This document shows, piece after piece, positions 9,103 to 36,605 of a stretch of 64,000 bases of DNA; position 1 is the first letter of the stretch, and each line of letters begins with the position of its first letter. The DNA lies in assembly GCA_002269645.1 (NCBI GenBank), contig NIVC01000836.1, forward strand, positions 1 to 64,000. The letters are read 5' to 3'. The DNA is from Macrostomum lignano. Its lineage: Eukaryota. The notes below the pieces were generated by a model, which saw nothing but the letters and a program-made list of their open reading frames with translations, was not told the DNA's origin and made no database searches. The position numbers were made by a program, and so were the translations under genes.

Positions 9103-12100
9103 TTAGCCTGGCTGGGACTGGACATCCCAGTAGGCCGGAGGCGGCGGCTGCTGCGACAGATTAATCGGGTATGGTGGCGGCTGTTGCTGCTCCTGTCCGT
9201 AGTAGTTTAACGGCTGCTCAGTCGGCTTGTTGATCAAGTCATTTGAAGCTGGAGCCAAGGTCGGCCGATTATCATGGCCACCCGCGGCTACAACAATCGG
9301 TTCTGCTACTTGAACGTTTGAAATTTGTAGCGCCGGATTGGTGTGCGCCACGGATACTGAGGCGCTTTGCGATTGGCTGAAATTTAGGTGTACATGGCAT
9401 ATTACATGTACACATGATTGAGTCTTGGGCGGATTTTGACCTCCGTTGGTATTGTCAGATTCGATTATGACTACTGAGAAAAGTATACAAATAAAGATTT
9501 GAATCGTAGAATGTATCACATATCGCAAAGATGTCACGAAACGTCTGTGCACACAGAGTGGTGGGAAAGTACGATGTGTGATAATGGCCGACTGACAGAG
9601 GCAAACCAAGCCAGAAACCGGTCTCGGTATGCCTGCATGAAGTTTGACCCATTTTTTAGTATCACAGGTAAATTGAGTGCGAATGATTCATCATGTCAGA
9701 ATTTCTCTATTGATAAGTAGAAAGTATGGAGTGTAGCGCGAAAAATCTATGCAATGAACATACTAGACGTTGTTCAGCGCTAGCCTAGCTCACACATTGG
9801 ATGGAGCCAGTTGAGGGCAATATCACACCCAGGTACATGCCATGTACAGTTGTACACGACAGAACTGACGATTTTGGCCCAAGGACAGTTATTTTACAGG
9901 AAAACTATAGCTATTGAAGGTGATCTTCTAAACTATTAACATTAACTTTAACGGTAAACTCTAACTTTAGCTGGTTCATTTTTGTCACTATAGTTTCCCA
10001 AAAGCTTGAAACATTAAGCATCTTCAACTCGAGAAAATGTTTTATGATATAATCTACCTTCACGAACTTTACGCACCTGTTCTTGTGCCTTTTGTAGCCC
10101 TTGTAGCATCGGTCAGCGATGTAGACGCAGACGCAGCAGCCCAGCACCACGCCAACGCAGAGTCCGATGACTCGGCCGCTGCTGCAATTGACGCATGCGA
10201 ATTTGTACTTTTACTTTGACCTTCTCGTATCTTAATCTTACTTTAAGCTTACTCATGATTCATATGAGCTTGATCTCATGATTGTTATGAGCTTGATCTC
10301 GTGACTGTTATGAGCTTGATCTCATGATTCATATGAGCTTGATCTCATGATTGTTATGAGCTTGATCTCGTGACTGTTATGAGCTTGATCTCATGACTGT
10401 TATGAGCTTGATCTCATGATTGTTATGAGCTTGATCTCATGATTGTTATGAGCTTGATCTCATGATTGTTATGAGCTTGATCTCGTGACTGTTATGAGCT
10501 TGATCTCATGACTGTTATGAGCTTGATCTCATGATTGTTATGAGCTTGATCTCGTGACTGTTATGAACTTGATCTCATGATTGCTATGAGCTTGATCTCG
10601 TGATTGTTATGAGCTTGATCTCGTGATTGCTATGAGCTTGATCTCATGATTGCTATGAGCTTGATCTCATGACTGTTATGAGCTTGATCTCGTGACTGTT
10701 ATGAGCTTGATCTCATGATTGTTATGAGCTTGATCTCGTGACTGTTATGAACTTGATCTCATGATTGCTATGAGCTTGATCTCGTGATTGTTATGAGCTT
10801 GATCTCGTGATTGCTATGAGCTTGATCTCATGATTGCTATGAGCTTGATCTCATGACTGTTATGAGCTTGATCTCATGATTGTTATGAGCTTGATCTCAT
10901 GATTGTTATGAGCTTGATCTCGTGATTGTTATGAGCTTGATCTCACGATTGCTATGAGCTTGATCTCATGATTGCTATGAGCTTGATCTCGTGATTGTTA
11001 TGAGCTTGATCTCATGATTGTTATGAGCTTGATCTCGTGATTGTTATGAGCTTGATCTCATGATTGCTATGAGCTTGATCTCATGATTGCTATGAGCTTG
11101 ATCTCGTGATTGTTATGAGCTTGATCTCGTGATTGCTATGAGCTTGATCTCATGATTGCTATGAGCTTGATCTCATGACTGTTATGAGCTTGATCTCATG
11201 ATTGCTATGAGCTTGATCTCATGATTGTTATGAGCTTGATCTCATGATTGCTATGAGCTTGATCTCATGATTGCTATGAGCTTGATCTCATGATTGTTAT
11301 GAGCTTGATCTCATGATTGCTATGAGCTTGATCTCATGATTGCTATAAGCTTGATCTCATGATTGCTATGAGCTTGATCTCATGATTGCTATGAGCTTGA
11401 TCTCATGATTGCTATGAGCTTGATTTCACTCTTCACATGAGCTTGATCTCATAATTGCTATGAGCTTGATTTCACTCTTCTCATGAGCTTGATCTCATAA
11501 TTGTTATGAGCTTGATTTCACTCTTCTCATGAGCTTGATCTCATGATTGTTATGAGCTTGATCTCATGATTGTTATGAGCTTGATCTCATGATTGTTATG
11601 AGCTTGATCTCATGATTGCTATGAGCTTGATTTCACTCTTCACATGAGCTTGATCTCATAATTGCTATGAGCTTGATTTCACTCTTCTCATGAGCTTGAT
11701 CTCATAATTGTTATGAGCTTGATTTCACTCTTCTCATGAGCTTGATCTCATGATTGTTATGAGCTTGATCTCATGATTGTTATGAGCTTGATCTCATGAT
11801 TGTTATGAGCTTGATCTCATGATTGTTATGAGCTTGATCTCATGACTGTTATGAGCTTGATCTCATAATACTTATGAGATTGATCTCATGATTTTTATGA
11901 GCTTGATCTCATTATTCTTATGAGCTTGATCTCATGATTTTTATGAGCTTGATCTCATGATTCTTATGAGCTTGATCTCATGATTTTTATGAGCTTGATC
12001 TCATGATTGTTATGAGCTTGATCTCGTGACTGTTATGAGCTTGATCTCATGACTGTTATGAGCTTGATCTCATGATTGTTATGAGCTTGATCTCATGATT

Positions 12101-15100
12101 GTTATGAGCTTGATCTCGTGACTGTTATGAGCTTGATCTCATGACTGTTATGAGCTTGATCTCATGATTGTTATGAGCTTGATCTCGTGACTGTTATGAA
12201 CTTGATCTCATGATTGCTATGAGCTTGATCTCATTATTCTTATGAGCTTGATCTCATGATTGTTATGAGCTTGATCTCGTGACTGTTATGAGCTTGATCT
12301 CATGACTGTTATGAGCTTGATCTCATGATTGTTATGAGCTTGATCTCGTGACTGTTATGAGCTTGATCTCATGATTGTTATGAGCTTGATCTCGTGACTG
12401 TTATGAACTTGATCTCATGATTGCTATGAGCTTGATCTCATGATTGCTATGAGCTTGATCTCGTGACTGTTATGAGCTTGATCTCATGATTGCTATGAGC
12501 TTGATCTCGTGATTGTTATGAGCTTGATCTCGTGATTGCTATGAGCTTGATCTCATGATTGCTATGAGCTTGATCTCGTGACTGTTATGAGCTTGATCTC
12601 ATGATTGTTATGAGCTTGATCTCATGATTGTTATGAGCTTGATCTCGTGATTGTTATGAGCTTGATCTCATGATTGCTATGAGCTTGATCTCGTGATTGT
12701 TATGAGCTTGATCTCGTGATTGCTATGAGCTTGATCTCATGATTGCTATGAGCTTGATCTCATGACTGTTATGAGCTTGATCTCATGATTGTTATGAGCT
12801 TGATCTCATGATTGTTATGAGCTTGATCTCGTGATTGTTATGAGCTTGATCTCATGATTGCTATGAGCTTGATCTCATGATTGTTATGAGCTTGATCTCG
12901 TGATTGCTATGAGCTTGATCTCATGATTGCTATGAGCTTGATTTCACTCTTCACATGAGCTTGATCTCATAATTGCTATGAGCTTGATTTCACTCTTCTC
13001 ATGAGCTTGATCTCATAATTGTTATGAGCTTGATTTCACTCTTCTCATGAGCTTGATCTCATGATTGTTATGAGCTTGATCTCGTGACTGTTATGAGCTT
13101 GATCTCATGATTGTTATGAGCTTGATCTCGTGACTGTTTGAGCTTGATCTCATGATTCATATGAGCTTGATCTCATGATTGTTATGAGCTTGATCTCGTG
13201 ACTGTTATGAGCTTGATCTCATGATTGTTATGAGCTTGATCTCATGATTGTTATGAGCTTGATCTCGTGACTGTTATGAGCTTGATCTCATGATTGTTAT
13301 GAGCTTGATCTCATGATTGTTATGAGCTTGATCTCGTGATTGTTATGAGCTTGATCTCGTGACTGTTATGAGCTTGATCTCATGACTGTTATGAGCTTGA
13401 TCTCATGATTGTTATGAGCTTGATCTCGTGACTGTTATGAACTTGATCTCATGATTGCTATGAGCTTGATCTCGTGATTGCTATGAGCTTGATCTCGTGA
13501 TTGTTATGAGCTTGATCTCATGATTGCTATGAGCTTGATCTCATGATTGTTATGAGCTTGATCTCATGATTGCTATGAGCTTGATCTCATGATTGCTATG
13601 AGCTTGATCTCATGATTGCTATAAGCTTGATCTCATGATTGCTATGAGCTTGATCTCATGATTGTTATGAGCTTGATCTCATGATTGCTATGAGCTTGAT
13701 CTCATGATTGCTATGAGCTTGATCTCATGATTGTTATGAGCTTGATCTCATGATTGCTATGAGCTTGATCTCATGATTGCTATAAGCTTGATCTCATGAT
13801 TGCTATGAGCTTGATCTCATGATTGCTATGAGCTTGATCTCATGATTGCTATGAGCTTGATTTCACTCTTCACATGAGCTTGATCTCATAATTGCTATGA
13901 GCTTGATTTCACTCTTCTCATGAGCTTGATCTCATAATTGTTATGAGCTTGATTTCACTCTTCTCATGAGCTTGATCTCATGATTGTTATGAGCTTGATC
14001 TCATGATTGTTATGAGCTTGATCTCATGATTGTTATGAGCTTGATCTCATGATTGCTATGAGCTTGATTTCACTCTTCACATGAGCTTGATCTCATAATT
14101 GCTATGAGCTTGATTTCACTCTTCTCATGAGCTTGATCTCATAATTGTTATGAGCTTGATTTCACTCTTCTCATGAGCTTGATCTCATGATTGTTATGAG
14201 CTTGATCTCATGATTGTTATGAGCTTGATCTCATGACTGTTATGAGCTTGATTTCACTCTTCACATGAGCTTGATCTCATAATTGCTATGAGCTTGATTT
14301 CACTCTTCTCATGAGCTTGATCTCATAATTGTTATGAGCTTGATTTCACTCTTCTCATGAGCTTGATCTCATGATTGTTATGAGCTTGATCTCATGATTG
14401 TTATGAGCTTGATCTCATGATTGTTATGAGCTTGATCTCATGATTGTTATGAGCTTGATCTCATGACTGTTATGAGCTTGATTTCACTCTTCACATGAGC
14501 TTGATCTCATAATTGCTATGAGCTTGATTTCACTCTTCTCATGAGCTTGATCTCATAATTGTTATGAGCTTGATTTCACTCTTCTCATGAGCTTGATCTC
14601 ATGATTGTTATGAGCTTGATCTCATGATTGTTATGAGCTTGATCTCATGATTGTTATGAGCTTGATCTCATGATTGTTATGAGCTTGATCTCATGACTGT
14701 TATGAGTTTGATCTCATGATTCCTATGAGCTTGATCTCATGATTTTTATGAGCTTGATCACATTATTCTTATGAGCTTGATCTCATGATTGTTATGAGCT
14801 TGATCTCATGATTTTTTTGAGCTTGATCTCATGATTCTTATGAGCTTGATCTCATGACTTTTATGAGCTTGATCTCATGATTTTTATGAGCTTGATCTCA
14901 TGATTCTTATGAGCTTGATCTCATGACTTTTATGAGCTTGATCTCATGATTTGCCAGCAACTCACTCCTCCCAGAAGCTGCAGCACCTCTGTCCATCCTC
15001 CTCCCCGCAGCAGTACACCTGGTCCTCCCGGCCCGGCTCGATCGGGCACACGAACAGGCCATAGACAGTTCGGTTCCGGTAGAGCCACGGCTCCACCACA

Positions 15101-16419
15101 GAGCTGTTGTGCTCAGCCGGCAGGTCGTCAATCACGTTGAAGCAGAGGGTGGCGCTGTCGGAGTAGTCAGAGTGGCGTCTCCGCCAGTGCCAGGAGGAGA
15201 AGAAGATGCCGCTGGTGTAGGCGCGCCTGTTCACGCGGTAGCTGACATAGTTGGGGGAGGGGGTGTACAGGGGGTAGTCACGACTATATTTAGCTTTCAA
15301 AGATAACCTAATTTAGGACGGGAAACTTCGTTTCTTAGAAAGTCATGAATGTTGGTTCTAAGCGTCCTTTCCGTGACTGGCCATTTTTATTGTTTCATTA
15401 AAGTGAAATTCAAATACTTTTCAAGAAACTATAATTGTCACGTCCTTTGCTTTTACGAGTACACAGGCCATCCTGCGTTACAGGTGTTTAAGATTCGAAC
15501 TCACGAGAATCGTTTGCTGACCAGTAGAGACATAGTGCTGTAGCCACTGCCTCTAGAAGAGCCATAGCGACCGCTGCTCCTACTGCCGCTGTACCTACTG
15601 CTGTACCTGCCGCCGCTGAACCTGCCACCGCCTCTGGCACCTGAGCTGCTACCGGCTGCGTGTGATCGAGGAGAGGCGATTTTAATCATGACAATCTACC
15701 TGACTCACTGCATGACAATCTACCTGACTCACTGCATGACAATCTACCTGACTCACTGCATGACAATCTACCTGACTCACTGCATGACAATCTACCTGAC
15801 TCACTGCATGACAATCTACCTGACTCACTGCATGACAATCTACCTGACTCACTGCATGACAATCTACCTGACTCACTGCATGACAATCTACCTGACTCAC
15901 TGCATGACAATCTACCTGACTCACTGCATGACAATCTACCTGACTCACTGCATGACAATCTACCTGACTCACTGCATGACAATCTACCTGACTCACTGCA
16001 TGACAATCTACCTGACTCACTGCATGACAATCTACCTGACTCACTGCATGACAATCTACCTGACTCACTGCATGACAATCTACCTGACTCACTGCATGAC
16101 AATCTACCTGACTCACTGCATGACAATCTACCTGACTCACTGCATGACAATCTACCTGACTCACTGCATGACAATCTACCTGACCCACTGCATGACAATC
16201 TACCTGACACACTTCATGACAATCTACCTGAATCACTGCATGACAATCTACCTGACTCACTGCATGACAATCTACCTGAAACTGCATATCTATCTACCTG
16301 ATACTGTACTACAATTCTGTGCACATTAAAGAACCTGGAACAACCGCAGCAACTGGAATCTTACCAATAGCCAGCAGAAGAATGAGGACAATAAGACAGT
16401 TGATAAGCTCCAGTTTCAT
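9103..16419 (-). CDS. Shisa-like/STMC6 (CX-type) single-pass membrane protein, paralogue A; 5 exons
   Basis: Exons 16419-16365, 15655-15505, 15241-14966, 10181-10077, 9376-9103; all GT-AG, phases 1/2/2/2, continuous frame. Signal peptide MKLELINCLIVLILLLAIAG; G/S/R-rich segment; 6-Cys ectodomain C..C..CC..CC (TLCF, VCP, YCCG, RCC); TM helix VIGLCVGVVLGCCVCVYI; cytoplasmic PPPY and PPAY motifs. Confidence 0.88.
10250..14950. repeat. 23-bp quasi-palindromic satellite filling intron 3 of paralogue A
   Basis: Unit TCATGATTGTTATGAGCTTGATC, about 200 copies. Variant blocks (GATTTCACTCTTCACATGAG) recur as higher-order repeats. Confidence 0.98.
15686..16285. repeat. 24-bp near-perfect minisatellite in intron 1 of paralogue A
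   Basis: Unit CATGACAATCTACCTGACTCACTG, about 24 copies, almost invariant. Confidence 0.98.
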
Positions 16420-17084
16420 GTTTTACGATCAGCAAACAATCTTTGCCACACTGCAATCTTCAGCTTTGCTGAACTCTAAAAAGGAAAAAAAAGTTCTTCA
16501 CTCAACTACTTGTATGGGACACCTCCCTGCCCTCTTCAGCAATTCTATAGCGGGGAAGGGGCAGAATCGATAATGGCTGCTCTGTCCCCTGGGGTGAGAG
16601 TTATAGAGCTGTTGTCATGACAACGGAGTCGCCCTCCCCTCTCACTGCACTCTCGTCCTCCTGGTTTCTCTCCACGTCTCACTCGCTGTCCTTCCCTGTT
16701 CCCCAAAATAAAATGGGAGTACAAAAACGCGAAATAATACATTTACAAAAGACTTAACGCTTTAACGAACATTATATTTTTTTTCGTTGATTTAATCTAC
16801 CTTACTAAAAAATATGGTTTCTTTTCACAGAGACAGCGCTATGCAAATGCTGCTAAGCCAATGGGAGAAGCAAGTTTGGTTTTTGATTTGAGCGATAAGA
16901 CACGGCTGGAAAGGGAAGGAGTTTTAAAATAAAGCACAAAAATTAGCGTACGACTGAATATTTTTTAAATACAAAAGTGATACACGAGGCTAAATTATAT
17001 ATTCGAGCCTGATGCTACTGCAACTTGACTCTCAAACTATAGTTCAGATCACCGAGGATCGTTGGGGACCTCTGAGGATTATTG

Positions 17085-18210
17085 GGGATCTCTATGAAAT
17101 TTCTTTGAGAATCTCTGAAGATCTCTGAGGATCTCTGAAGATCTCTGAGGATCTCTGAGGATCTCTAAAGATCTCTGAGGATCTCTGAAGTTCTCTGAGG
17201 ATCTCTGAAGATCTCTGAGGATCTCTGAAGATCTATGGGAATCTTTGAGGATCTCTGAAGATCTCTGAGGATCTCTGAAGATCTCTGAGGATCTCTGAAG
17301 ATCTCTGAGGATCTCTGAAGATCTCTGAGGATCTCTGAAGATCTCTGAGGATCTCTGAAGATCTCTGAGGATCTCTGAAGATCTATGGGAATCTTTGAGG
17401 ATCTCTGAAGATCTATGGGAATCTTTGAGGATCTCTGAAGATCTCTGAGGATCTCTGAAGATCTCTGAGGATCTCTGAGGATCTCTGAAGATCTCTGAGG
17501 ATCTCTGAAGATCTCTGAGGATCTCTGAAGATCTCTGAGGATCTCTGAAGATCTATGGGAATCTTTGAGGATCTCTGAAGATCTATGGGAATCTTTGAGG
17601 ATCTCTGAAGATCTCTGAGGATCTCTGAAGATCTCTGAGGATCTCTGAGGATCTCTGAAGATCTCTGAGGATCTCTGAAGATCTCTGAGGATCTCTGAAG
17701 ATCTCTGAGGATCTCTGAAGATCTATGGGAATCTTTGAGGATCTCATATATTTCTAGAGATATCTCTAAGGATCGCTAGGTATCTCTGGGGATCTCAAAT
17801 ATTTCTAGAGATATCTAAGGATCGCTAGGGATGTCTGGCGATCTCATATATTTCTGGGGATATCTAAGCATCGCTAGGGATCTCTGGGGATTTTTTGGGG
17901 TCTCTAGGTATCTCTGGGGATCTCAAATATTTCTAGCGATATCTGAGGATCGCTAGGGATCTCTGGGGATTTTTTGGGGGTTTCTAGGGATCTCTGGGGA
18001 TCTCAAATATTTCTAGGGATATCTAAAGATCGCTAGGGATGTCTGGCGATCTCAAATATTTCTGGGGATATCTAAGGATCGCTAGAGATCTCTGGGGATT
18101 TTTTGGGGGTCTCTAGGGATCTCTGGGGATCTCAAATATTTCTAGGGATATCTAAAGATCTCGAGAATATTTGGGTAACTCTGAGAATCTCTGAGGATCT
18201 CTGAGAATAT
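17085..18210. repeat. Intergenic 10/20-bp GATCTCTGA(A/G) satellite followed by a degenerate longer-period tail
   Basis: GATCTCTGAAGATCTCTGAG tandem to about 17750, with GATCTATGGGAATCTTTGAG variants. It continues as degenerate GGGATCTCAAATATTTCTAG...GGATCGCTAGG units to about 18210. Confidence 0.93.
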
Positions 18211-18348
18211 TTTAGCAAAATGACATAAGGATTTCTGCTGACTAGAGTGTTCCAGAGAAATCAAATCCTTGAGAATTCAAAAACCTCGGCCTACCCTGCC
18301 CGAGTCCCTGAAGATCCTGTCAAGTCGCTCAGCTAATTGCTGAGCGCC

Positions 18349-21300
18349 TCATCTCCGACTAACCGCCCAGTAAGGAGGCGGCGGCGTGGTGGGTTGTAGC
18401 GGATAATCGCCATCCATCTGCTGGCGCCGCTGCCTCTCGTCCCACATCTCCTCTAGCACTGTGTCGTATCTTGGCGGAGATTCTGGTTTGTCATCTTGAG
18501 CTGCTTCTGGTGCTGCTGCTGCAGACGATGATGATGAAGCTGCTGCTGCACCAGCTTCAGCTGCAGCCGCTGGTTGCTCTGCTGTGGCACCTGGATTGCC
18601 TCCAGCACCTGCCGAATGCTCTTCGACTTGGTTTCTGCGCGAAGAAGATGATTATTTATGACACATGCATGCGGTACGAGTAGTATGGATCATTCCTGCC
18701 TCTAAATTCTGTCTCAAAGTTAAATATCAAAAAAATTCCCTGTAAATTATGCTTTTAGAAGCTCTTAACTTCAAACTTCTTGTACATGTACTAACCAACT
18801 TCCAAAAGCTTAAAAGATGCCTAACTTCATATTCCTCCAAGCTAAACATTCCCCAAGCTAAACATTCTCCAAGTTAAACATTCCCCAAGCTAAACATTCC
18901 CCAAGTTAAACATTCCCCTAGCTATAAACATTTCCCAACTTCATACTTCACTATCAAGTTTTAAAATATCCCAAAAATTTGGTCAGTTTACAACCAAGGA
19001 CCACTAGGAACTCTTCGATGTAGTCTAGTCTGTCTAGTCTAGTAGTCCTTGGTTGGAAATTTTACGAACCTTCTGACGCCGCGGGACCTGACGCAGGCCT
19101 GCCAAAGGCGGATCGAAGCCACGAAACCGGAGGCCAAACCGCACACCAAGCCGAAGGTTGCCGAAGCGACCCGGGACGCGCTGGGTGGTTGGGTGGAATC
19201 AAGTGTGAGTCAAGTGTGAGTCAACTATGAGTCAAATGTGAGGAAACTGTGAGTCAACTATGAGTCAAATGTGAGGAAACTGTGAGTCAACTATGAATCA
19301 GGTGTGAGTCAAATGTCAGTCAACTATGAATCAAGTGTGAGTCAACTATGAGTTAAGTGTGAGTCAATGTGAGTCAAGTGTAAGTCAAGTGTGAGTCAAC
19401 TATGAATCAAGTGTGAGTCAAGTGTGAATCAAATGTGGGTCAACTGTGAGTCAACTATGAGTCAACTATGATTCAGATATGAGTTTAGTCTAGTGTAAGA
19501 TAGCTCTGAACTCACTCCTCCCAGAAGCTGCAGCACCTCTGTCCATCCTCCTCCCCGCAGCAGTTCACCTGGTCCTCCCGGCCCGGCTCGATCGGGCAGA
19601 CGAACAGGCCATAGACAGTTCGGTTCCGGTAGAGCCACGGCTCCACCACAGAGCTGTTGTGCTCAGCCGGCAGGTCGTCAATCACGTTGAAGCAGAGGGT
19701 GGCGCTGTCGGAGTAGTCAGAGTGGCGTCTCCGCCAGTGCCAGGTGGAGAAGAAGATGCCGCTGGTGTAGGCGCGCCTGTTCACGCGGTAACTGTAAGGA
19801 GGGGGGAGAGCAGGGCAGCTCAGCGGTACGGGGGTTCGATTCCGTGCGCAACCACAAACAGTTGGCCAGGCGGTTGTAATGCAATTCGCAACCATGAGGG
19901 CCAGCCCCCAAGGCACAGAGAGTGTACATGCCTGACGATTAGAAAGTCAGGGCTGCTGTAAACCCTGTGTGAGCGTGTGTATGAGTGCTGTGCCTGCGTA
20001 CAGCATTGGCGCGCTTGTATGCTCAGGAGCCAGCGGAATGGCGGTATGAGTGCTTGTCTTCTAGCTGGCCCCAGTCCCCACTAATCCAAGGTCATCAAGC
20101 ACCCAATGAAGTTCACTCACGGAAATTTGCTACTAACAAACACAGACACACTTCCGGAGCTACGGAAACTGGAGCGGCTGCTCCGACTGCCGGTTGAGCT
20201 CTTGCCAATCGCGGGGCAAAGCATCAGCTCTGCGTGAGTTGCGTGGATGCTTGGGCTGAGTTTTTCTAAGTCCATGATAGATGGAATTTCGGGTTAAGGA
20301 AAAAAGGAGAGAATAAGGAGAGTGAGAGAGATGAGAGATAGAGAGAGGAGAGAAGGAGAGGAGACAGGGAGAGAGGAAGAGAGAGGAGGGAGGGAGAGAG
20401 GATAGATAGAGGAGAGTTAGAGGAGAGAGTAGAGAGGGAGAGAGAGGAGAGAGAGAAGAGAAAGAGAGGAGAGAGAGGAGGGAGGAGATAGGGAGAAAGG
20501 GAGAGAGAGGAGAGAGAAGAGAGAGGATAGAAGAGAGAGGGAGAGAGAGAGAGGAGAGAGAAGAGAGAGGATAGAAGAGAGAGGGAGAGAGAGAGGAGAG
20601 AGAAGAGAGAGGATAGAAGAGAGAGGGAGAGAGAGGATAGAAGAGAGAGGACAGAAGAGAGAGGGAGAAAGAGGAGAGAGAAGAGAGAGGGAGAGAGAGA
20701 AGAGAGAAGAGAGAGGATAGAAGAGAGAGGACAGAAGAGAGAGGGAGAGAGAGAAGAGAGAAGAGAGAGGACAGAAGAGAGAGGATAGAAGAGAGAGAAG
20801 AGAGAGGATAGAAGAGAGAGAAGAGAGAGGATAGAAGAGAGAGAAGAGAGAGGATAGAAGAGAGAGAAGAGAGAGGACAGAAGAGAGAGGATAGAAGAGA
20901 GAGAAGAGAGAGGATAGAAGAGAGAGAAGAGAGAGGATAGAAGAGAGGGAGAGAGAGAAGAGAGAAGAGAGAGGACAGAAGAGAGAGGATAGAAGAGAGA
21001 GAAGAGAGAGGATAGAAGAGAGAGAAGAGAGAGGATAGAAGAGAGAGAAGAGAGAGGATAGAAGAGAGAGAAGAGAGAGGATAGAAGAGAGAGAAGAGAG
21101 AGGATAGAAGAGAGAGGATAGAAGAGAGAGAAGAGAGAGGATAGAAGAGAGAGGGAGAGAGAGGAGAGAGGATAGAAGAGAGAGGGAGAGAGAGGAGAGA
21201 GGACAGAAGAGAGAGGGAGAGAGAGGAGAGAGAAGAGAGAGGACAGAAGAGAGAGGGAGAGAGAGGAGAGAGGACAGAAGAGAGAGGGAGAGAGGGAGAG

Positions 21301-21464
21301 AGAGGAGAGAGGACAGAAGAGAGAGGGAGAGAGAGGAGAGAGGACAGAAGAGAGAGGGAGATGCAGATACGCGGTAGAAGGCAAATATATCAAGCGATCT
21401 TACCAGCAGTGATAGCGATGCAGAGTGCCCAACTCACAGCAGAGATATTTCTGTTGCAAAGCAT
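18349..21464 (-). CDS. Shisa-like/STMC6 (CX-type) single-pass membrane protein, paralogue B; 5 exons
   Basis: Exons 21464-21404, 20229-20121, 19791-19516, 19180-19070, 18634-18349; GT-AG, phases 1/2/2/2. Signal peptide MLCNRNISAVSWALCIAITAELMLCPAIG; S/R-rich segment; the same 6-Cys ectodomain as A; TM VASATFGLVCGLASGFVASI; tail with PPRY and PPPPY. Confidence 0.87.
19195..19490. repeat. Degenerate 10-bp (GAGTCAAGTGT/GAGTCAACTAT) repeat in intron 3 of paralogue B
   Basis: Tandem TGAGTCAA-core units. Confidence 0.88.
20295..21362. repeat. GA-rich polypurine array in intron 1 of paralogue B
   Basis: AGAAGAGAGAGGA(T/C) units; nearly pure purine on the + strand. Confidence 0.96.
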
Positions 21465-21849: not shown

Positions 21850-22430
21850 TGGGAGAGTAGATGAGACAGGGTGATATCAGATGAGACGGGGGTGTGAGAT
21901 AGCAGATGAGATAGGATGAGAGAATGTAGAAAACGGGGTGAAAGATTAGCTGAGACAAAGTGAGAGAATAGATGAGACTGAGTGAGACTGAGTGAGATCA
22001 GATAAGATAAAGGGAGATCAGATGAGATAAGGTGGGATCAGATGAAATAAAGTGAGATCAGATGAGATAGGGTGAGATCAGATGAGATAGGGTGAGATCA
22101 GATGAGACAGGGTGAGATCAGATGAGATAGGGTGAGATCAGATGAGATAGGGTGAGATCAGATGAGATAGGGTGAGATCAGATGAGATAGGGTGAGATCA
22201 GATGAGACAGGGTGAGATCAGATGAGATAGGGTGAGATCAGATGAGATAGGGTGAGATCAGATGAGATAGGGTGAGATCAGATGAGACAGGGTGAGATCA
22301 GATGAGATAGGGTGAGATCAGATGAGATAGGGTGAGATCAGATGAGATAGGGTGAGATCAGATGAGACAGGGTGAGATCAGATGAAATAGGGTGAGATCA
22401 GATGAGATAGGGTGAGATCAGATGAGACAG
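21850..22430. repeat. 20-bp minisatellite
   Basis: Unit GATGAGATAGGGTGAGATCA, homogeneous from about 22040 to 22420, with a degenerate left flank. Confidence 0.95.
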
Positions 22431-22696
22431 GAGTGTGTGAGAATGATATTAAGCAAGTTAAGTGGGTTTCGTGGCAAGCTAAGAGTAGGTCAGACTTTCA
22501 TCAGAATTTTTTTATTTTAAACGCGATTTTGCGATCAAAACGGTCTATGCGATCAAAACAAACAAAGAATGTTATTGATACGGAAAAGGTCACTTGCAGC
22601 TTTCATGTAGGTCCGTAGAAATTTAATTTATTTGATAAATAAACAAGCAAAAAATAACATGGGTTCAAATGATCAGCTTTAACCTTATTAGTTTTT

Positions 22697-25330
22697 CCCA
22701 ATCCTCAGGTGCGTCATCTTCTCAATCCTCAGGTGGGTCATCTTCCCAATCCTCAGGTGCGTCATCTTCTCAATCCTCAGGTGGGTCATCTCCTAATCCT
22801 CAGGAGGGTCATCTCCCAATCCTCAGATGGGTCATCTCCCAATCCTCAGATGGGTCATCTTTTCAATCATCAAGTGGGTCATCTCCCAATCCTCAGATGG
22901 GTCATCTTTTCAATCATCAAGTGGGTCATCTCCCAATCCTCAGATGGGTCATCTTCTCAATCCTCAGGTGGGTCATCTCCCAATCCTCAGATGGGTCATC
23001 TTCTCAATCATCAAGTGGGTCATCTCCCAATCCTCAGATGGGTCATCTTCTCAATCCTCAGGTGGGTCATCTTCTCAATCCTCAGGTGGGTCATCTTCTC
23101 AATCCTCAGGTGAGTCATCTTCTTAATCCTCAGGTGGGTCATCTTCTCAATCCTCAGGTGGGTCATCTCTCATCCTCAGGTGGGTCATCTTCTCAATCCT
23201 CAGGTGGGTCATCTCTCATCCTCAGGTGGGTCATCTTCTCAATCCTTCGGTGGGTCATCTTCTCAATCCTCAGATGGGTCATCTTCTCAATCCTCAGGTG
23301 GGTCATCTCCCAATCCTCAGATGGGTCATCTTCTCAATCATCAAGTGGGTCATCTCCCAATCCTCAGATGGGTCATCTTCTCAATCATCAAGTGGGTCAT
23401 CTCCCAATCCTCAGATGGGTCATCTTCTCAATCCTCAGGTGGGTCATCTTCTCAATCCTCAGGTGGGTCATCTTCTCAATCCTCAGGTGGGTCATCTTCT
23501 CAATCCTCAGGAGGGTCATCTCCCAATCCTCAGGTGGGTCATCTTCTCAATCCTCAGGTGGGTCATCTTCTCAATCCTCAGATGGGTCATCTCTCATCCT
23601 CAGGTGGGTCATCTTCTCAATCCTCAGGTGGGTCATCTCTCATCCTCAGGTGGGTCATCTTCTCAATCCTTCGGTGGGTCATCTTCTCAATCCTCAGATG
23701 GGTCATCTTCTCAATCCTCAGGTGGGTCATCTTCTCAATCCTCAGGTGGGTCATCTTCTCAATCCTTCGGTGGGTCATCTTCTCAATCCTCAGATGGGTC
23801 ATCTTCTCAATCCTCAGGTGGGTCATCTCTCATCCTCTGGTGGGTCATCTTCTCAATCCTCAGGTGGGTCATCTCTCATCCTCAGGTGGGTCATCTTCTC
23901 AATCCTCAGGTGGGTCATCTCCCAATCCTCAGATGGGTCATCTTCTCAATCATCAAGTGGGTCATCTCCCAATCCTCAGATGGGTCATCTTCTCAATCCT
24001 CAGGTGGGTCATCTTCTCAATCCTCAGGTGGGTCATCTTCTCAATCCTCAGGTGAGTCATCTTCTTAATCCTCAGGTGGGTCATCTTCTCAATCCTCAGG
24101 TGGGTCATCTCTCATCCTCAGGTGGGTCATCTTCTCAATCCTCAGGTGGGTCATCTTCTCAATCCTCAGGTGGGTCATCTTCTCAATCCTTCGGTGGGTC
24201 ATCTTCTCAATCCTCAGATGGGTCATCTTCTCAATCCTCAGGTGGGTCATCTCTCATCCTCTGGTGGGTCATCTTCTCAATCATCAAGTGGGTCATCTCC
24301 CAATCCTCAGATGGGTCATCTTCTCAATCATCAAGTGGGTCATCTCCCAATCCTCAGATGGGTCATCTTCTCAATCCTCAGGTGGGTCATCTTCTCAATC
24401 CTCAGGTGGGTCATCTTCTCAATCCTCAGGTGGGTCATCTTCTCAATCCTCAGGTGGGTCATCTTCTCAATCCTCAGGAGGGTCATCTCCCAATCCTCAG
24501 GTGGGTCATCTTCTCAATCCTCAGGTGGGTCATCTTCTCAATCCTCAGGTGGGTCATCTCTCATCCTCAGGTGGGTCATCTTCTCAATCCTCAGGTGGGT
24601 CATCTCTCATCCTCAGGTGGGTCATCTTCTCAATCCTCAGGTGGGTCATCTTCTCAATCCTCAGATGGGTCATCTTCTCAATCCTCAGGTGGGTCATCTT
24701 CTCAATCCTCAGGTGGGTCATCTTCTCAATCCTCAGATGGGTCATCTTCTCAATCCTCAGGTGGGTCATCTTCTCAATCCTTCGGTGGGTCATCTTCTCA
24801 ATCCTCAGATGGGTCATCTTCTCAATCCTCAGGTGGGTCATCTCTCATCCTCTGGTGGGTCATCTTCTCAATCCTCAGGTGGGTCATCTCTCATCCTCAG
24901 GTGGGTCATCTTCTCAATCCTCAGGTGGGTCATCTCCCAATCCTCAGGTGGGTCATCTTCTCAATCCTTCGGTGGGTCATCTTCTCAATCCTCAGATGGG
25001 TCATCTTCTCAATCCTCAGGTGGGTCATCTCCCAATCCTCAGATGGGTCATCTTCTCAATCCTCAGGTGGGTCATCTTCTCAATCCTCAGGTGGGTCATC
25101 TTCTCAATCCTCAGGTGGGTCATCTTCTCAATCCTTCGGTGGGTCATCTTCTCAATCCTCAGATGGGTCATCTTCTCAATCCTCAGGTGGGTCATCTTCT
25201 CAATCCTCAGATGGGTCATTTTCTCAATCCTCAGGTGGGTCATCTTCTCAATCCTCAGGTGGGTCATCTTCTCAATCCTTCGGTGGGTCATCTCCCTCTC
25301 CAATACTCAGGTAGGTCACTTCAAACTCTT
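22697..25330. repeat. 24/23-bp satellite just downstream of the paralogue C stop codon
   Basis: Unit CTCAATCCTCAGGTGGGTCATCTT, with 23-bp variants that shift frame. This explains the overlapping SSQSSGGS/LLNPQVGH/ILRWVIFS ORFs. Confidence 0.98.
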
Positions 25331-25378
25331 CAGATCGGTCATCTTCCCAATCCTCAAATGCGATCAATTCGGCCGTTG

Positions 25379-28300
25379 CTAGGCCGTCGTCGGCGGACCC
25401 TTCCGTCGCACTCCGACCTTCCGCGGCGCCGGTGCCCCCGACGACGAATACGAGCACTCCTCAGGACCAGTTGGCAGAGAAGCCGCTTCGTCCATTGCTT
25501 GGTTGCGAGCGCTGAATAAGCTGGCCCGGCTGCCCGCTCCGCTGAATGGGACGGGCAAAATTATGGTTTAATATGCTGATAGGTTTTCAGCTGCCTATGG
25601 TGAATGAGACAGGGAGAGAGTAGATGAGACAGGTAGAAGAGTAGATGAGACAGGGAGAGAGTGGATGAGACAGGGAGAGAGTAGATGAGACAGGTAGAAG
25701 AGTAGATGAGACAGGGAGAGAGTGGATGAGACAGGAAGAGAGTAGATGAGACAGGTAGAAGAGTAGATGAGACAGGTAGAAGAGTAGATGAGACATGGAG
25801 AGAGAGTATGAGACCGTGAGAGAGAGTAGATGAGGCAGGGTGACAGAGCAGATGAGACAGGGAGAGAGAGTAGATGAGGCAGGGTGGCAGAGCAGATGAG
25901 ACAGGGAGAGAGAGAGTATATGAGGCAGGGTGACAGAGCAGATGAGACAGGGAGAGAGAGAGTATATGAGGCAGGGTGACAGAGTATGAGACAGGGAGAG
26001 AGAGAGTATATGAGGCAGGGTGACAGAGTATGAGACAGGGAGAGAGAGTAGATGAGGCAGGGAGAGAGAGTAGATGAGGCAGGGAGAGAGAGTAGATGAG
26101 GCAGGGAGAGAGAGTAGATGAGGCAGGGTGGCAGAGCAGATGAGACAGGGAGAGAGAGAGAGTAGATGAGGCAGGGTGACAGAGCAGATGAGACAGGGAG
26201 AGAGAGTAGATGAGGCAGGGTGGCAGAGCAGATGAGACAGGGAGAGAGAGAGAGTATATGAGGCAGGGTGACAGAGCAGATGAGACAGGGAGAGAGAGAG
26301 TATATGAGGCAGGGTGACAGAGTATGAGACAGGGAGAGAGAGAGTATATGAGGCAGGGTGACAGAGTATGAGACAGGGAGAGAGAGTAGATGAGGCAGGG
26401 AGAGAGAGTAGATGAGGCAGGGAGAGAGAGTAGATGAGGCAGGGTGGCAGAGCAGATGAGACAGGGAGAGAGAGAGTAGATGAGGCAGGGTGACAGAGCA
26501 GATGAGACAGGGAGAGAGAGAGTATATGAGGCAGGGTGACAGAGTATGAGACAGGGAGAGAGAGAGTATATGAGGCAGGGTGACAGAGTATGAGACAGGG
26601 AGAGAGAGTAGATGAGGCAGGGAGAGAGAGTAGATGAGGCAGGGTGACAGAGCAGATGAGACAGGGAGAGAGAGAGTATATGAGGCAGGGTGACAGAGTA
26701 TGAGACAGGGAGAGAGAGAGTATATGAGGCAGGGTGACAGAGTATGAGACAGGGAGAGAGAGTAGATGAGGCAGGGAGAGAGAGTAGATGAGGCAGGGTG
26801 ACAGAGCAGATGAGACAGGGAGAGAGAGAGTATATGAGGCAGGGTGACAGAGCAGATGAGACAGGGAGAGAGAGTAGATGAGGCAGGGAGAGAGAGTATA
26901 TGAGGCAGGGTGACAGAGTATGAGACAGGGAGAGAGAGTAGATGAGGCAGGGTGACAGAGCAGATGAGACAGGGAGAGAGAGAGTATATGAGGCAGGGTG
27001 ACAGAGCAGATGAGACAGGGAGAGAGAGAGTATATGAGGCAGGGTGACAGAGTATGAGACAGGGAGAGAGAGTAGATGAGGCAGGATGACAGAGCAGATG
27101 AGGCAGGGAGAGAGAGTAGATAAGGTAGGGCGAGAGAGTAGATGAGGCAGGATGACAGAGCAGATGAGGCAGGGAGAGAGAGTAGATAAGGTAGGGCGAG
27201 AGAGTAGACTAGACAGGGAGAGAGTAGGTTAGACAGGGAGATCCAATCATTGCACTCGCTCACCTTCTCCAGCTCAGCTGTCTCCTGGACCACCTAAACA
27301 GCCATGCGGCGAACACTGAGCAGCTGATGCCAGCCAGGGCAACTCCGACAACAACTGAAGACAGCCGACTGAAGCTGCGGGTTTTCCATACAGGATTCTT
27401 CATCAAATTGGGGGAAATTATTAGTTAGAAAACAAAGAAAATAATGCATGTATTACTTACTCATCCCAGAAGGTGCAGCACTCCTGACCGTCCTTGAAGC
27501 CGCAACAGTACACCTTGTCCAGTTGGTTATCCAACGGGCAGACGTGTAGGCCGAGTACCGTACGGTTCTGGTAGAGCCAGGGCTGCATTACTGAGTCATT
27601 TAGCCAGCTGGGCAGGTCGTGTCGCACGCTGAAGCACAGGGTCATGCTGTCGCTGTACTCTGGATGGGCTGCTCGCCAGTCCTTTGAGGCCAGAATGATG
27701 CCGAGGCGGTAGGCTGTGTACTTGGCTAGGAAGCTGGGTATGGGATTGGGTGGGTCTGTTTTGAAGCTTCCTGATTGGCTGTGGAGTTGAACTAGCCTAC
27801 GCCTAGAGTAGTGAGGTGGGTCTCTTTCCAATGGAGCTCTCTGATTGGCTGTGGAGTTGAACTAGCCTACGCCTAGAGTAGTGACATGGGTCTCTTTGCA
27901 ATGGAGCTCTCTGATTGGCTGTGGAGTTGACTAGCCTACGCCTAGAGTAGTGAGGTGGGTCTCTTTTTAATGGAGCTCTCTGATTTGTTGTGGAGTTGAA
28001 CTTGGTCCAGGGGTATGTAGAGAGGCGAATGATATTATATTTTAGGCTAAATCAGGTGGGTGTTAAAATGATTAATATGAGTACTGCTCACGAGAACCGA
28101 CTGCGGATGAGCATTGGCAGCGAGGAGAAGCCGCCGCTTCCGGACGAGCCGTAGCGGCTGTTTTTCCGAGTGCTGCCGCCGGCTCGGCTGCCTGCGCCCT
28201 TCGTACGGGGAACTCCTTTGCTGTACAAGGGGCTCGCGGCTGAAGAGCGAGTGAGATTTGTTTCAATCTGGGGGCTTCGAAAGTGTTCTTGGCACAAGCT

Positions 28301-29980
28301 TTCCTCTTTTGCCAGCCTTCTCCTCTCTCCCTCTCGACCCTCCTCTCTCCCTCTCAATTCTCCTCTCTCCCTCTTAACCCTCCTCTCTCTCCTTCTCAAC
28401 CATCTCTCTCTCTCTCTCTCTCAAACCTCCTCTCTCACTCTCAACCCTCCTTTCTCTCTCTCAACCCTCCTCGCTCTCAACCCTCCTCTCTCTCGCTCTC
28501 AACCCTCCTCTCTCGCTCTCAACCCTCCTCTCTCGCTCTCAACCCTCCTCTCTTGCTCTCAACCCTCCTTTCTCTCTGTCAACCCTCTCTCTCGTTCTCA
28601 ACCCTCCTCTCTCACTCTCAACCCTCCTTTCTCTCTCTCAACCCTCCTCTCTCTCAACCCTCCTCTATCCTTCTCAATCATCCTCAGTCTCCTTCTCAAC
28701 CCTCCTCTCTCGCTTTCAACCCTCCTCTCTCTCAACCCTCCTCTCTATCCTTCTCAATCATCCTCAGTCTCCTTCTCAACCCTCCTCTCTCGCTCTCAAC
28801 CCTCCTCTCTCTCAACCCTCCTCTCTATCCTTCTCAATCATCCTCAGTCTCCTTCTCAACCCTCCTCTCTCGCTCTCAACCCTCCTCTCTTGCTCTCAAC
28901 CCTCCTTTCTCTCTGTCAACCCTCCTCTCTCCTTCTCAACCCTCCTCTCTCGCTCTCAACCCTCCTCTCTCTCGCTCTCAACCCTCCTCTCTCGCTCTCA
29001 ACCCTCCTCTCTCGCTCTCAACCCTCCTCTCTTGCTCTCAACCCTCCTTTCTCTCTGTCAACCCTCTCTCTCGTTCTCAACCCTCCTCTCTCACTCTCAA
29101 CCCTCCTTTCTCTCTCTCAACCCTCCTCTCTCTCAACCCTCCTCTCTATCCTTCTCAATCATCCTCAGTCTCCTTCTCAACCCTCCTCTCTCGCTTTCAA
29201 CCCTCCTCTCTCTCAACCCTCCTCTCTATCCTTCTCAATCATCCTCAGTCTCCTTCTCAACCCTCCTCTCTCGCTCTCAACCCTCCTCTCTCTCAACCCT
29301 CCTCTCTATCCTTCTCAATCATCCTCAGTCTCCTTCTCAACCCTCCTCTCTCGCTCTCAACCCTCCTCTCTTGCTCTCAACCCTCCTTTCTCTCTGTCAA
29401 CCCTCCTCTCTCCTTCTCAACCCTCCTCTCTCGCTCTCAACCCTCCTCTCTCTCGCTCTCAACCCTCCTCTCTCGCTCTCAACCCTCCTCTCTCGCTCTC
29501 AACCCTCCTCTCTTGCTCTCAACCCTCCTTTCTCTCTGTCAACCCTCTCTCTCGTTCTCAACCCTCCTCTCTCACTCTCAACCCTCCTTTCTCTCTCTCA
29601 ACCCTCCTCTCTCTCAACCCTCCTCTCTATCCTTCTCAATCATCCCCAGTCTCCTTCTCAACCCTCCTCTCTCGCTCTCAATACTCCTCTCTCGCTCTCC
29701 TTCTCCCTCTTAACCCTCCTCTCTCTCCTTCTCAACCATCTCTCTCTCTCAAACCTCCTCTCTCACTTTCAACCCTCCTCTCTCGCTCTCAACCCTCCTC
29801 TCTCCCTCTCAACCCTCCTCTCTCTCCTTCTCAACCCTCCTCTCTCGCCCTCAATCCTCCTCTCTCGCCTCCTCTTTCCCTCTCATGCATGAATCCTTCC
29901 CCGCTAAGCCAGGCTTGCAAAAATTCCTTACCAACTGAAAGCAGCAACAAAATCTGCAGAATTCTTCGAGTTCCAAGCAT
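25379..29980 (-). CDS. Shisa-like/STMC6 (CX-type) single-pass membrane protein, paralogue C; 5 exons
   Basis: Exons 29980-29932, 28239-28092, 27733-27461, 27374-27264, 25541-25379; GT-AG, phases 1/2/2/2. Signal peptide MLGTRRILQILLLLSVA; G/S/R-rich segment ending RSRFS; ectodomain YSDSMTLCF...PWLYQNRTVLGLHVCP...VYCCG..DGQECCTFW; TM LSSVVVGVALAGISCSVFAAWLF. The last exon is less certain and has no PPxY. Confidence 0.83.
25603..27240. repeat. GA-rich minisatellite filling intron 4 of paralogue C
   Basis: GAGAGTAGATGAG(A/G)CAGGG and GTGACAGAGCAGATGAG units with higher-order structure. Confidence 0.96.
27770..28005. repeat. About 70-bp tandem repeat (3+ copies) in intron 2 of paralogue C
   Basis: CTGATTGGCTGTGGAGTTGAACTAGCCTACGCCTAGAG... 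starts at 27771, 27841, 27911, with a partial copy at about 27980. Confidence 0.93.
28315..29885. repeat. CT-rich (CTCTCAACCCTCCT) array filling intron 1 of paralogue C
   Basis: Tandem CTCTCAACCCTCCTCTCT units with TCAATCATCCTCAG variants and block duplications. Confidence 0.96.
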
Positions 29981-34853: not shown

Positions 34854-36605
34854 CAAGGACTTCTCTATATAGCATCTGGACTGGAAGCTTCGCAATTTTT
34901 TTTCCGTCTCTATACCTCACAGGGGCAAAAGAAGAAAAGACCCAGAAGGAGGAAAGGAGACAGGAAAAATTTAACTGTCAAGCTGGCCATAAACATGACA
35001 AAGACACTGTACACAGAAAAGAAGCAAAGTTCAGGGGCATGCAGGGAAGAGCTCATGGGGTAAAGTTTATCCCCCAACAATGAATCTTTAACATGTACGT
35101 TTATCTTGAAAACTAGTCTGCTATTCGGACTGAGTCATGACTGGAGGTGATGAGTGGGAGTCCCACTCCCACGTTCTATATATACTGACGAGCTGGCTGT
35201 ACTGTACAAATGAAAAAGAAAATTTTGCCTTCAGTGCCTGCCTCATCAATTTCACAATACTGCTACAGTTGCTTCAAGCACTGACAATTTTGTTCCAACA
35301 AAATGGTTAAGTCGTGCTCAGCACAGGGCTGCGCTAATCGAGCCTCCTCGGACAAGCGAATGAGCTTTCATGGCTATCCTATGCACAATGCAGTCCTTCT
35401 TGAACAATGGAAGCGAGCAAATCCAAGGCAGAACTTCGAGCCTACCAAGAGCTCAACCATTTGCTCTGCGCACTTCCACCCCAAGACTTCGTGGAAAACT
35501 CTCTGGACACCAACGCCAACGCGAACCGCAAGAAGAGCCGGGACCAACTGTCGAGGCGGTGTCTGAAGCCAGGGACGGTGCCGTCTATCTTCCCGAATAG
35601 ACTTATCTCTCTTCTTATCTCTCTTCTGCCGGTCAACTGCGGCAACATCAACTCAGCGCTTGGAGAGAAAATACTGCACTGCAAGGCCAAATTGATGAGT
35701 TCCGAGATGCGGACTCAATCGTTGACGACTACCTTGATGAAGTGCAGCTAAAACTGAATCGAGAGGAAGGAAAACCGGCAGGATTTCATACCACCATGCT
35801 TGCTGACCAGCTGTATCTACACGCTGAACATGGAGCCTTCCTTTCATGTCTCCTGCTACATCTACATGGATAAAGACCACAGCATCACTATTGGAGTCAA
35901 CTGAGTGTTGCTAAAGCCAACCCGACTCAGAGACTTACTTTCGGACGGGAAAGTATCGACTCTCAGTCAACTAGTCAACATAATATCCAGAGTCAAGAAC
36001 TGGGAGGTAGACACTGACAGTGCCAAAGCTGAAGGCAAGGCCAACCGTATGCTTGACATGGCCCAAGATCTTCTGGAAGAAGCGGAGAATCTTGTTAATA
36101 ATCGCACTGTTGGCTTCATTTTGGAGCAGCTGAAACTCAGCAGGCAGCCGAGCTGCAGAAGGAGATATTCACAGCAGCTCATGATCTTCGCTTATGTTCT
36201 GTACTCCACCAGCGCTTCGGCTTATAAGACAATACTGGAGCAGGACGTCCTCTGTTTTCCATCTGATCGAACCCTTCGGTCTGCTTCAGCCAAAGTTGGT
36301 TCAAAGAATGGTCTAGACATCGAAAGCTACCTTCAGTTGAGAGCATCGAAGTTATCGAAATTTATCGAAATCGAATCGAAAATCGAAATTTTTAATAATC
36401 GAAATTATTAAAAAAAGAAATCTAAATCATTCTGAATGAATTTTTATTAAGCTCATGATTTATATAACAATATAAGTGCATAATGGCCAGCTATCTAATA
36501 TACGATGTAACTAGGATCTAAGCTATTTTGGGAAGGGCTTTTGCCCCTCTAAGGTATATGCGGGTGGGGAGCTTCCAGTCCAGATGCTATATAGAGAAGT
36601 CCCTG
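34854..36605 (+). mobile_element. Internally deleted, non-autonomous P-superfamily (THAP9/P/Galileo-like) DNA transposon
   Basis: 36-bp TIRs with 1 mismatch: CAAGGACTTCTCTATATAGCATCTGGACTGGAAGCT at 34854-34889 and its complement at 36570-36605; CA...TG termini. TSD GGTGAGA at 34847-34853 and 36606-36612 (an 8-bp reading GGGTGAGA is also possible). It encodes a THAP domain and the transposase N-terminal region. Confidence 0.92.
35303..36411 (+). pseudogene. Frameshifted, truncated THAP/P-element transposase
   Basis: THAP domain MVKSCSAQGC...FHGYP...W...ICSAHF, continuing in another frame to LKPGTVPSIF. Next is FILEQL...RRYS...FAYVLYSTSASAY...FPSDRTLR...YLQLRASKL, which stops just before the expected first catalytic Asp of the RNase H domain and runs into TCGAAA low-complexity sequence. 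Confidence 0.88.

Follow-up and report, generated by a model that had tools for sequence, protein, structure and literature searches.

Near-identity confined to one ectodomain exon of two tandem Shisa-like paralogues in Macrostomum lignano points to interlocus gene conversion

Introduction

How can two neighbouring genes share one almost identical exon when the sequence around it has diverged to saturation? The question is raised by a cluster of three five-exon Shisa-like genes, which follow one another as C, B and A, head to tail and all on the minus strand, in a stretch of 64,000 nucleotides from the flatworm Macrostomum lignano (assembly GCA_002269645.1, contig NIVC01000836.1, positions 1 to 64,000; the whole stretch is hereafter called the window). 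The predicted proteins of A, B and C have the same layout, with a signal peptide, a Gly/Ser/Arg-rich stretch, an ectodomain (exon 3), a transmembrane (TM) segment (exon 4) and a tail (exon 5), and it is exon 3 that is nearly the same in A and B. An earlier reading of the sequence (hereafter the original prediction) attributed this to recent, exon-limited gene conversion, possibly templated by spliced RNA or cDNA or bounded by divergent intronic repeats, or else to exon shuffling. Here, we compare the two exons with their surroundings and with other copies of the locus, and weigh the explanations against one another.

Exon 3 of genes A and B is nearly identical, even at synonymous sites

When the two minus-strand segments were compared without gaps, 272 of 276 positions were identical (98.6%), with a longest exact run of 145 nt and an alignment score 41.7 standard deviations above that of shuffled sequence (z = 41.7). 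The four differences are exactly those listed in the original prediction: the junction base at exon position 1 (C in A, T in B; window positions 15241 and 19791), T/A at position 47 (Ser to Thr), G/C at position 193, which is synonymous in a Val codon, and T/A at position 227, which changes Tyr to Asn in the motif VYCCG. Outside the exon, a further 3 nt upstream (CAG) and 7 nt downstream (GTGAGTT) are the same in both genes, after which identity is random; it thus ends, as had been claimed, within a few bases of both splice sites. Since the extra shared bases are splice consensus, and GTGAGT is found at four of the ten other donors of the cluster, the tract may stop exactly at the exon edges.

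Substitution rates were estimated by the Nei-Gojobori method. For exon 3 of A and B the proportion of synonymous differences (pS) was 0.017, the number of synonymous substitutions per site (dS) 0.017 and that of nonsynonymous substitutions (dN) 0.009, with one synonymous difference in 58 sites. When exon 3 was used as a BLAST query against the window, one further copy only was returned (about 71% identity over 198 nt), which is exon 3 of gene C. This third copy is about 68% identical in nucleotide sequence and 54% identical in amino acid sequence to exon 3 of A and of B; its longest exact run with that of A is 10 nt, and the A-C comparison gave pS 0.52, dS 0.87 and dN 0.39.

These values bear on the view that the identity of the two exons is maintained by purifying selection alone, or by an overlapping element acting at the nucleotide level. 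In line with that view, no part of the family is more conserved than the ectodomain; yet a single synonymous difference in 58 sites has to be set against a pS of 0.5 between A and C, under the same protein constraint, and a search of the window against Rfam returned no element, that is, no match to a structured RNA. Because the synonymous sites are identical as well, selection alone is ruled out, and we attach next to no probability to this explanation as a whole.

The remainder of the two genes has diverged to saturation

In the other exons, A and B are 47-61% identical at the nucleotide level, against 45-54% expected from shuffling (z 2.4-4.6), and their longest exact runs are of 7-12 nt. 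For exons 1 and 2 taken together pS was 0.78, dS was saturated and dN was 0.49; for exons 4 and 5, pS was again 0.78 with saturated dS, and dN was 0.94. The Smith-Waterman scores of introns 2 and 4 and of the upstream and downstream flanks were no better than those of shuffles, and intron 3 of A could be aligned with that of B no better than shuffled sequence. The divergence of the other exons and introns, as described in the original prediction, is therefore borne out. In the comparison of dS that it had called for, exon 3 of A and B (0.017) stands apart from saturation elsewhere and from exon 3 of A and C (0.87). Similarly high identity in other exons or introns, which would indicate a plain recent duplication, was found nowhere between A and B. 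Exon 3 pairs A with B, whereas in exon 2 A scores higher with C (z 7.8) than with B (z 4.0); the remaining exons are too saturated to resolve. Outside exon 3, it is if anything B that has diverged furthest among A, B and C.

Nearly every intron and spacer of the window is filled by its own minisatellite, with units of 11-30 bp and arrays of up to 4.7 kb. A shared origin of the minisatellites in intron 3 of A and of B was considered and rejected, as the similarity was not significant. The idea that the block is bounded by divergent intronic repeats holds on the 3' side only, where the array begins 15 nt past the exon-3 donor in A and 41 nt past it in B; on the 5' side, both genes have unique sequence in intron 2. 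As a side effect, the minisatellites of the window give rise to long spurious open reading frames (ORFs) in all frames.

Two distinct copies of exon 3 recur in other assembled sequences

The inbred DV1 genome contains three paralogous genome copies, which are about 2.2% apart in single-nucleotide polymorphisms and differ by many indels, and its assembly is error-prone owing to these copies (PMC10733133). In such a three-copy neopolyploid genome one exon 3 could have been made, or polished, from the reads of the other, and the description of the Mlig_3_7 assembly as error-prone, with genome copies about 2% apart (PMC10733133), speaks for such an artefact. The other Mlig_3_7 copies of the locus are L002 on contig 169 (NIVC01000169.1; g1) and L003 on contig 3002 (NIVC01003002.1; g2), and P0121 (UniProt A0A1I8FEP8) is a gene prediction made on the older, independent and indel-rich ML2 assembly.

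Several features of these copies are of the kind that an artefact would produce. Gene B of g1 lacks 208 bp (window 19620-19827; L002 4908/4909), comprising the last 36 nt of intron 2 and the first 172 nt of exon 3, with 2 nt of microhomology at the junction; this deletion is either a null allele or a consensus error. The first base of L003 corresponds to the second base of B intron 3 (window 19514); contig 3002 therefore ends one base past B exon 3, at the very point at which identity with exon 3 of A sets in. Exon 3 of A carries different single-G deletions in g1 (L002 11541-11815) and g2 (L003 6515-6789), at exon positions of about 272 and 239; since they are situated in G runs they look like PacBio consensus errors, which they probably are, and they result in the frameshifted NCBI proteins P0122 and P0137 (PAA88926.1, PAA53914.1). 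Thus, it is precisely at exon 3 of B that the locus is structurally polymorphic or difficult to assemble.

The two exons nevertheless keep variants of their own. Exon 3 of B differs from that of A at positions 1, 47, 193 and 227, and three of these four differences are repeated in P0121, as Thr versus Ser (47), CSS versus CSC (193) and GELLRG versus RTRCTAAG (227). This prediction runs from exons 3 and 4 of B to exon 3 of A and on into the beginning of A intron 3, which is also the order of these segments in the window. Position 193 is G in all three copies of A exon 3, and C in both copies of B exon 3 and in exon 3 of C; the C of B thus recurs in g1, where the remaining 104 nt of the exon (its last part) are joined to the B-specific intron 3. 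In the window, B-specific introns are contiguous with exon 3 on both sides, and boundaries that follow splice sites and reading frame are not to be expected of an artefact. The existence of two copies of exon 3, each with distinct variants, is, then, reproducible across assemblies. A collapse or chimera of the assembly, which the original prediction had named as a possible source of error, is very improbable in our view, judging by the assembled sequences. The name of P0121, 'C-type lectin domain-containing', is a mis-annotation due to the tandem near-identical exons.

The copies also offer a hint at dating. As site 193 is locus-specific, and sites 222 (Gln to Arg, private to B of g1) and 227 (Tyr to Asn, private to B of the window) are copy-specific, the last full homogenisation may be dated to the split of the genome copies compared, or earlier. 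It would be of about the same age as the separation of the three M. lignano genome copies, after which B would have acquired damaging changes peculiar to single copies. Between the window and contig 169, identity is 99.6-100% over C, over exons 1 and 2 of B and over the whole of A, and only about 97% from exon 4 of B to just upstream of exon 1 of A (approximately 16420-19180). Such a mosaic is suggestive of exchange between genome copies, one edge of which lies beside exon 3 of B.

Probable DNA-templated gene conversion would account for the extent of the tract

We consider it likely that exon 3 was shared by DNA-templated interlocus gene conversion between A and B. The core of the original prediction, exon-limited conversion between diverged paralogues, is upheld by the contrast between a dS of 0.017 and saturation, and between an exact run of 145 nt and runs of 7-12 nt; the qualifications added to it fared less uniformly. 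According to the mechanism that we propose, A, B and C would be old paralogues, arranged in tandem, from a spiralian Shisa-like family of single-pass membrane proteins, and exon 3 would have been overwritten by non-reciprocal homologous recombination between copies that lie 4.5 kb apart in direct orientation. Heteroduplex formation or annealing would reach the exon edges and not extend into the unrelated introns, with the same outcome whichever copy was broken. The tract would coincide with the exon because no other homology remains between A and B, and the introns must have lost theirs long before the last event, given saturation elsewhere as against a dS of 0.02 in exon 3.

Was this a single event? 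Long-running, exon-confined concerted evolution is more likely than the single rescue of a long-diverged exon, because an exon 3 of B as diverged as that of C would lack the homology needed for recombination. The word 'recent' in the original prediction thus applies to the last homogenisation, and not to a one-off event, for which a longest shared run of at most 10 nt, as between exon 3 of A and of C, offers too little homology. After the duplication, the unconstrained introns, with their minisatellite turnover, would have escaped conversion, and so would the short exons, of 55-151 nt, and the tail exon with its weak constraint, while the 276-nt exon, under purifying selection, would have stayed similar enough to go on recombining. 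The GC content at third codon positions (GC3) is 0.89 in exon 3 of A and 0.88 in that of B, the highest of all 15 exons, and 0.77 in that of C; this fits GC-biased conversion over a long period, and is only a hint. As a guide to the direction of transfer GC3 was of no help, exon 3 being richer in GC3 than the other exons of both genes.

Several points weigh against recurrent conversion from a genomic template. The GC3 excess of exon 3 in A and B over C is modest (82 of 92 versus 70 of 91 codons), and both recurrence and transfer direction were judged from M. lignano sequences only. Long-term concerted evolution of this kind usually carries flanking intron along, and homogenised intron was part of the criterion applied in PMC2720389; at A and B no intron base past the splice consensus is common to both genes. 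If the event was single and recent instead, a recipient as diverged as exon 3 of C (runs of 10 nt or less) should have offered too little homology. Finally, the assembly is error-prone at exon 3 of B itself, as the end of contig 3002 and the 208-bp gap of contig 169 indicate.

A tract that ends at both splice sites also brings to mind a spliced template. Gene conversion mediated by cDNA, and break repair templated by RNA, have been obtained in yeast and human-cell experiments, and would give tracts that end at exon junctions. A spliced RNA or cDNA of one paralogue that repaired a break in exon 3 of the other would explain why identity ends, to within the splice consensus, at both sites, why there is no intron co-conversion at all even though intron 2 is a short stretch of unique sequence in A and in B, and why the exon alone is identical where other parts may have too little homology. 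M. lignano is, moreover, rich in repeats, and a P-element-like fragment is present in the window, in which no reverse transcriptase was seen. The boundary pattern cannot, however, separate the two templates, because both predict the same outcome: with introns that were already unalignable, a genomic template gives the same boundaries. Both flanking introns, 2 and 3, are kept in A and B, whereas cDNA-mediated recombination typically removes introns, their loss being its usual hallmark; exons 2 and 4, which are the neighbours of exon 3 in a cDNA, show no trace of conversion, and the first base of exon 3 differs between A and B. The only sequence in which exon 4 of B appears to be spliced to exon 3 of A is P0121; it was considered as a chimeric B-to-A transcript and rejected, since it is an ML2 gene prediction and not a cDNA. 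Such a template is not needed for exon 3 of A and B, and seems to us an improbable source.

The requirement for homology could be avoided altogether if a copy of about 280 bp had been inserted by template switching or microhomology-mediated repair, displacing the old exon. An exon 3 of B as diverged as that of C would have shared runs of no more than 10 nt with that of A, and the 208-bp deletion of microhomology type in g1, at the very same exon, implies that breaks and end-joining do occur there. Against such a replacement, introns 2 and 3 of B contain no relic of an older exon 3: the best tblastn match (window 19993-19868) had E = 0.54, and the Smith-Waterman scores equalled those of shuffles. 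The copy keeps the reading frame and the intron phases, its splice sites on both sides are functional, and it has neither junction scars nor a duplicated flank; so precise a swap is far easier by homologous exchange. Exons 1, 2, 4 and 5 of B, its intron phases and its junction motifs are typical of the family, which indicates that B was a member of the family before the event and received a homologous replacement. We hold exon shuffling, too, to be improbable, to about the same degree as a spliced template, and retain genomic gene conversion as the explanation of choice.

Gene models, family membership and the condition of gene B

The coordinates of the gene models and of the other features are collected in Table 1. 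Intron phases (1, 2, 2, 2) and AG/GT splice sites are common to A, B and C, and so are the motifs at the exon ends (...RFS / DxSRV / PPPPxYW). The five-exon model of A agrees at every residue with the NCBI transcript-based protein BOX15_Mlig028763g3 (P0140), and its 92-aa exon-3 peptide is present verbatim in P0122 and P0140. P0140 is encoded on contig NIVC01000836.1, and bases 1-26419 of this contig, when reverse-complemented, match window 1-26419 without a difference. For C, UniProt A0A1I8HBP1 (P0123), whose start falls inside exon 2, is 100% identical to the model over exons 2, 4 and 5 and 98.9% identical over exon 3, the sole mismatch being the codon split at the exon 3/4 junction.

Table 1. 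Positions of the genes, exons, introns and repeats of the cluster in the window
Feature	Position	Strand	Remarks
Gene A (Mlig028763g3)	9103..16419	-	286 aa; identical to NCBI P0140; tblastn of P0122 and P0124
Gene A exons	16419-16365, 15655-15505, 15241-14966, 10181-10077, 9376-9103	-	
Gene B	18349..21464	-	Open 280-aa ORF; sole support is prediction P0121
Gene B exons	21464-21404, 20229-20121, 19791-19516, 19180-19070, 18634-18349	-	
Gene C	25379..29980	-	UniProt A0A1I8HBP1 (P0123)
Gene C exons	29980-29932, 28239-28092, 27733-27461, 27374-27264, 25541-25379	-	
A exon 3	14966..15241	-	276 nt, phase 2/2; whole Cys-rich ectodomain core (YRVN...CCSFWE)
B exon 3	19516..19791	-	276 nt; 4 positions unlike A exon 3; reproduced by ML2 prediction P0121
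Maximal identity tract in A	14959..15244	-	CAG + exon 3 + GTGAGTT, 286 nt
Maximal identity tract in B	19509..19794	-	CAG + exon 3 + GTGAGTT, 286 nt
A intron 2	15242..15504	-	263 nt, unique sequence; Smith-Waterman score against B intron 2 12, shuffles 9.5±1.4
B intron 2	19792..20120	-	329 nt, unique sequence; not alignable to A intron 2
Minisatellite filling A intron 3	10252..14951		23-bp unit, ~204 copies, 4.7 kb
Minisatellite filling B intron 3	19199..19475		11-bp unit
Minisatellite arrays of the window, first part	4400-6600, 10252-14951, 15687-16301, 17102-18205, 19199-19475, 20316-21361, 21992-22431		
Minisatellite arrays of the window, second part	22695-25356, 25614-27224, 28320-29871, 37500-41300, 49500-50350, 55400-56600		

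The label 'Shisa-like' stands with a reservation. Against the gathering cut-off of 22 bits for Pfam Shisa_N (PF13908), A scored 18.9-20.6 bits and B 15.9 bits, both below threshold and over profile positions 7-40 of 50 only, and C gave no match; the relatives P0125-P0128, however, pass the cut-off with 23.9-26.6 bits. In UniProt, proteins of the family are named 'CX domain-containing' or 'Shisa N-terminal domain-containing'. A profile search with the family returned M. lignano and mollusc proteins only. The ectodomain is a single exon also in the solitary paralogues Mlig001147 and Mlig020245, which have no tandem paralogue within the flanks examined (up to 10 kb). Two mollusc homologues, P0127 of Pinctada imbricata and P0128 of Magallana gigas, contain two complete units (Gly/Ser/Arg-rich stretch, ectodomain, TM segment, tail) per predicted protein; the family is probably tandemly arrayed in molluscs too, the double units being either fused by prediction or read through.

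The architecture predicted for A and B matches that of the Shisa-like/STMC6 transmembrane adaptors. In the account of Pei and Grishin (2012), as far as it is cited in PMC11399591, Shisa and STMC6 proteins likewise have a signal peptide, a Cys-rich YCCG...CC ectodomain, a single TM segment and PPxY motifs in a proline-rich tail. Unlike these proteins, A and B score below the Pfam gathering threshold, C has no match, and a long Gly/Ser/Arg-rich stretch precedes the domain. In all three genes of the cluster, the hydrophobic exon 4 follows FWED. The tail contains PPPY and PPAY in A, PPRY and PPPY in B, and no PPxY motif in C. The PPxY motifs in the tail of STMC6 recruit NEDD4-type E3 ligases with WW domains (PMC11399591), and by analogy A and B may be PPxY adaptors that recruit ligases of this type.

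Whether B is still a working gene is less certain. All 13 other family sequences aligned, which include flatworm, oyster and pearl oyster proteins, have the Tyr of YCCG, and Asn is found only in B of the window; the g1 copy of B lacks the acceptor of exon 3, and no transcript-based NCBI model of B was found. For these reasons B may be a partly decayed, or decaying, partner. This weakens the idea, put forward in the original prediction, of two working receptors with one shared ectodomain on different membrane and cytoplasmic modules. The idea is literally true of the predicted proteins; their tails, with two PPxY motifs each, are alike, and carry the same type of motif rather than opposed activating and inhibitory modules.

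Three further features of the window lie outside the cluster. An exon with C2H2 zinc fingers (31077-32300, minus strand), directly upstream of gene C, is probably part of a 582-aa gene that is annotated in a paralogous contig (L001). An ORF at 35905-36411 (plus strand) matches the helix-turn-helix domain of P-element transposases with 21.2 bits, below the cut-off of 23, and is probably a transposon remnant. A single-exon ZMAT2/SNU23 gene lies at 48729-49328 (minus strand) and is 98% identical to M. lignano BOX15_Mlig031251g3.

Discussion

Both segment-limited concerted evolution and the conversion of ectodomain exons in paired receptors are already established. The former has been documented (PMC2720389, PMC5701461, PMC2832619), with interlocus conversion between BMP8A and BMP8B, DDX19A and DDX19B, and TUBG1 and TUBG2 as examples (PMC2720389), and mosaic divergence has been described in tandem paralogues (bioRxiv 10.1101/2025.10.29.685298). 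Genes A and B resemble these cases in being old tandem paralogues in the same orientation, with one stretch that is near-identical even at synonymous sites and a diverged remainder. They differ from the mammalian cases, in which adjacent introns are homogenised (PMC2720389), in that the block is a single exon and the rest is fully saturated.

In paired immune receptors it is the ligand-binding exon that has been homogenised, as in SIGLEC11/16 (PMC5701461), SIGLEC5/14 (PMC4042635) and the paralogues of CEACAM1 (PMC2832619, PMC7042247). As in the SIGLEC and CEACAM pairs, an ectodomain exon is common to A and B, probably by conversion, and the TM and cytoplasmic exons differ. As with SIGLEC16P, such pairs often have one partner of which a null or pseudogene allele is frequent, and B may be of this kind. 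The parallel has its limits: the tails of A and B are not opposed, the proteins do not belong to the immunoglobulin superfamily, and the tracts of the SIGLEC and CEACAM genes include introns.

The A/B locus is thus a very clean member of an established kind of conversion, and is unusual only in its one-exon tract, the lack of intron co-conversion and the total saturation around it. Its 98.6% identity against complete saturation, ending at both splice sites, makes it an unusually clean natural case of one-exon conversion. There is also a warning for annotation in a three-copy neopolyploid genome, in which exon-level identity breaks contigs and yields fused predictions such as UniProt A0A1I8FEP8. 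As a small locus, with 4.5 kb between the copies, in an animal ready for transgenesis, it could be used to determine the minimal homology of ectopic conversion in a flatworm, and to test RNA-templated repair. The locus also illustrates how purifying selection, together with minisatellite turnover in the introns, can shrink a block of concerted evolution to one exon.

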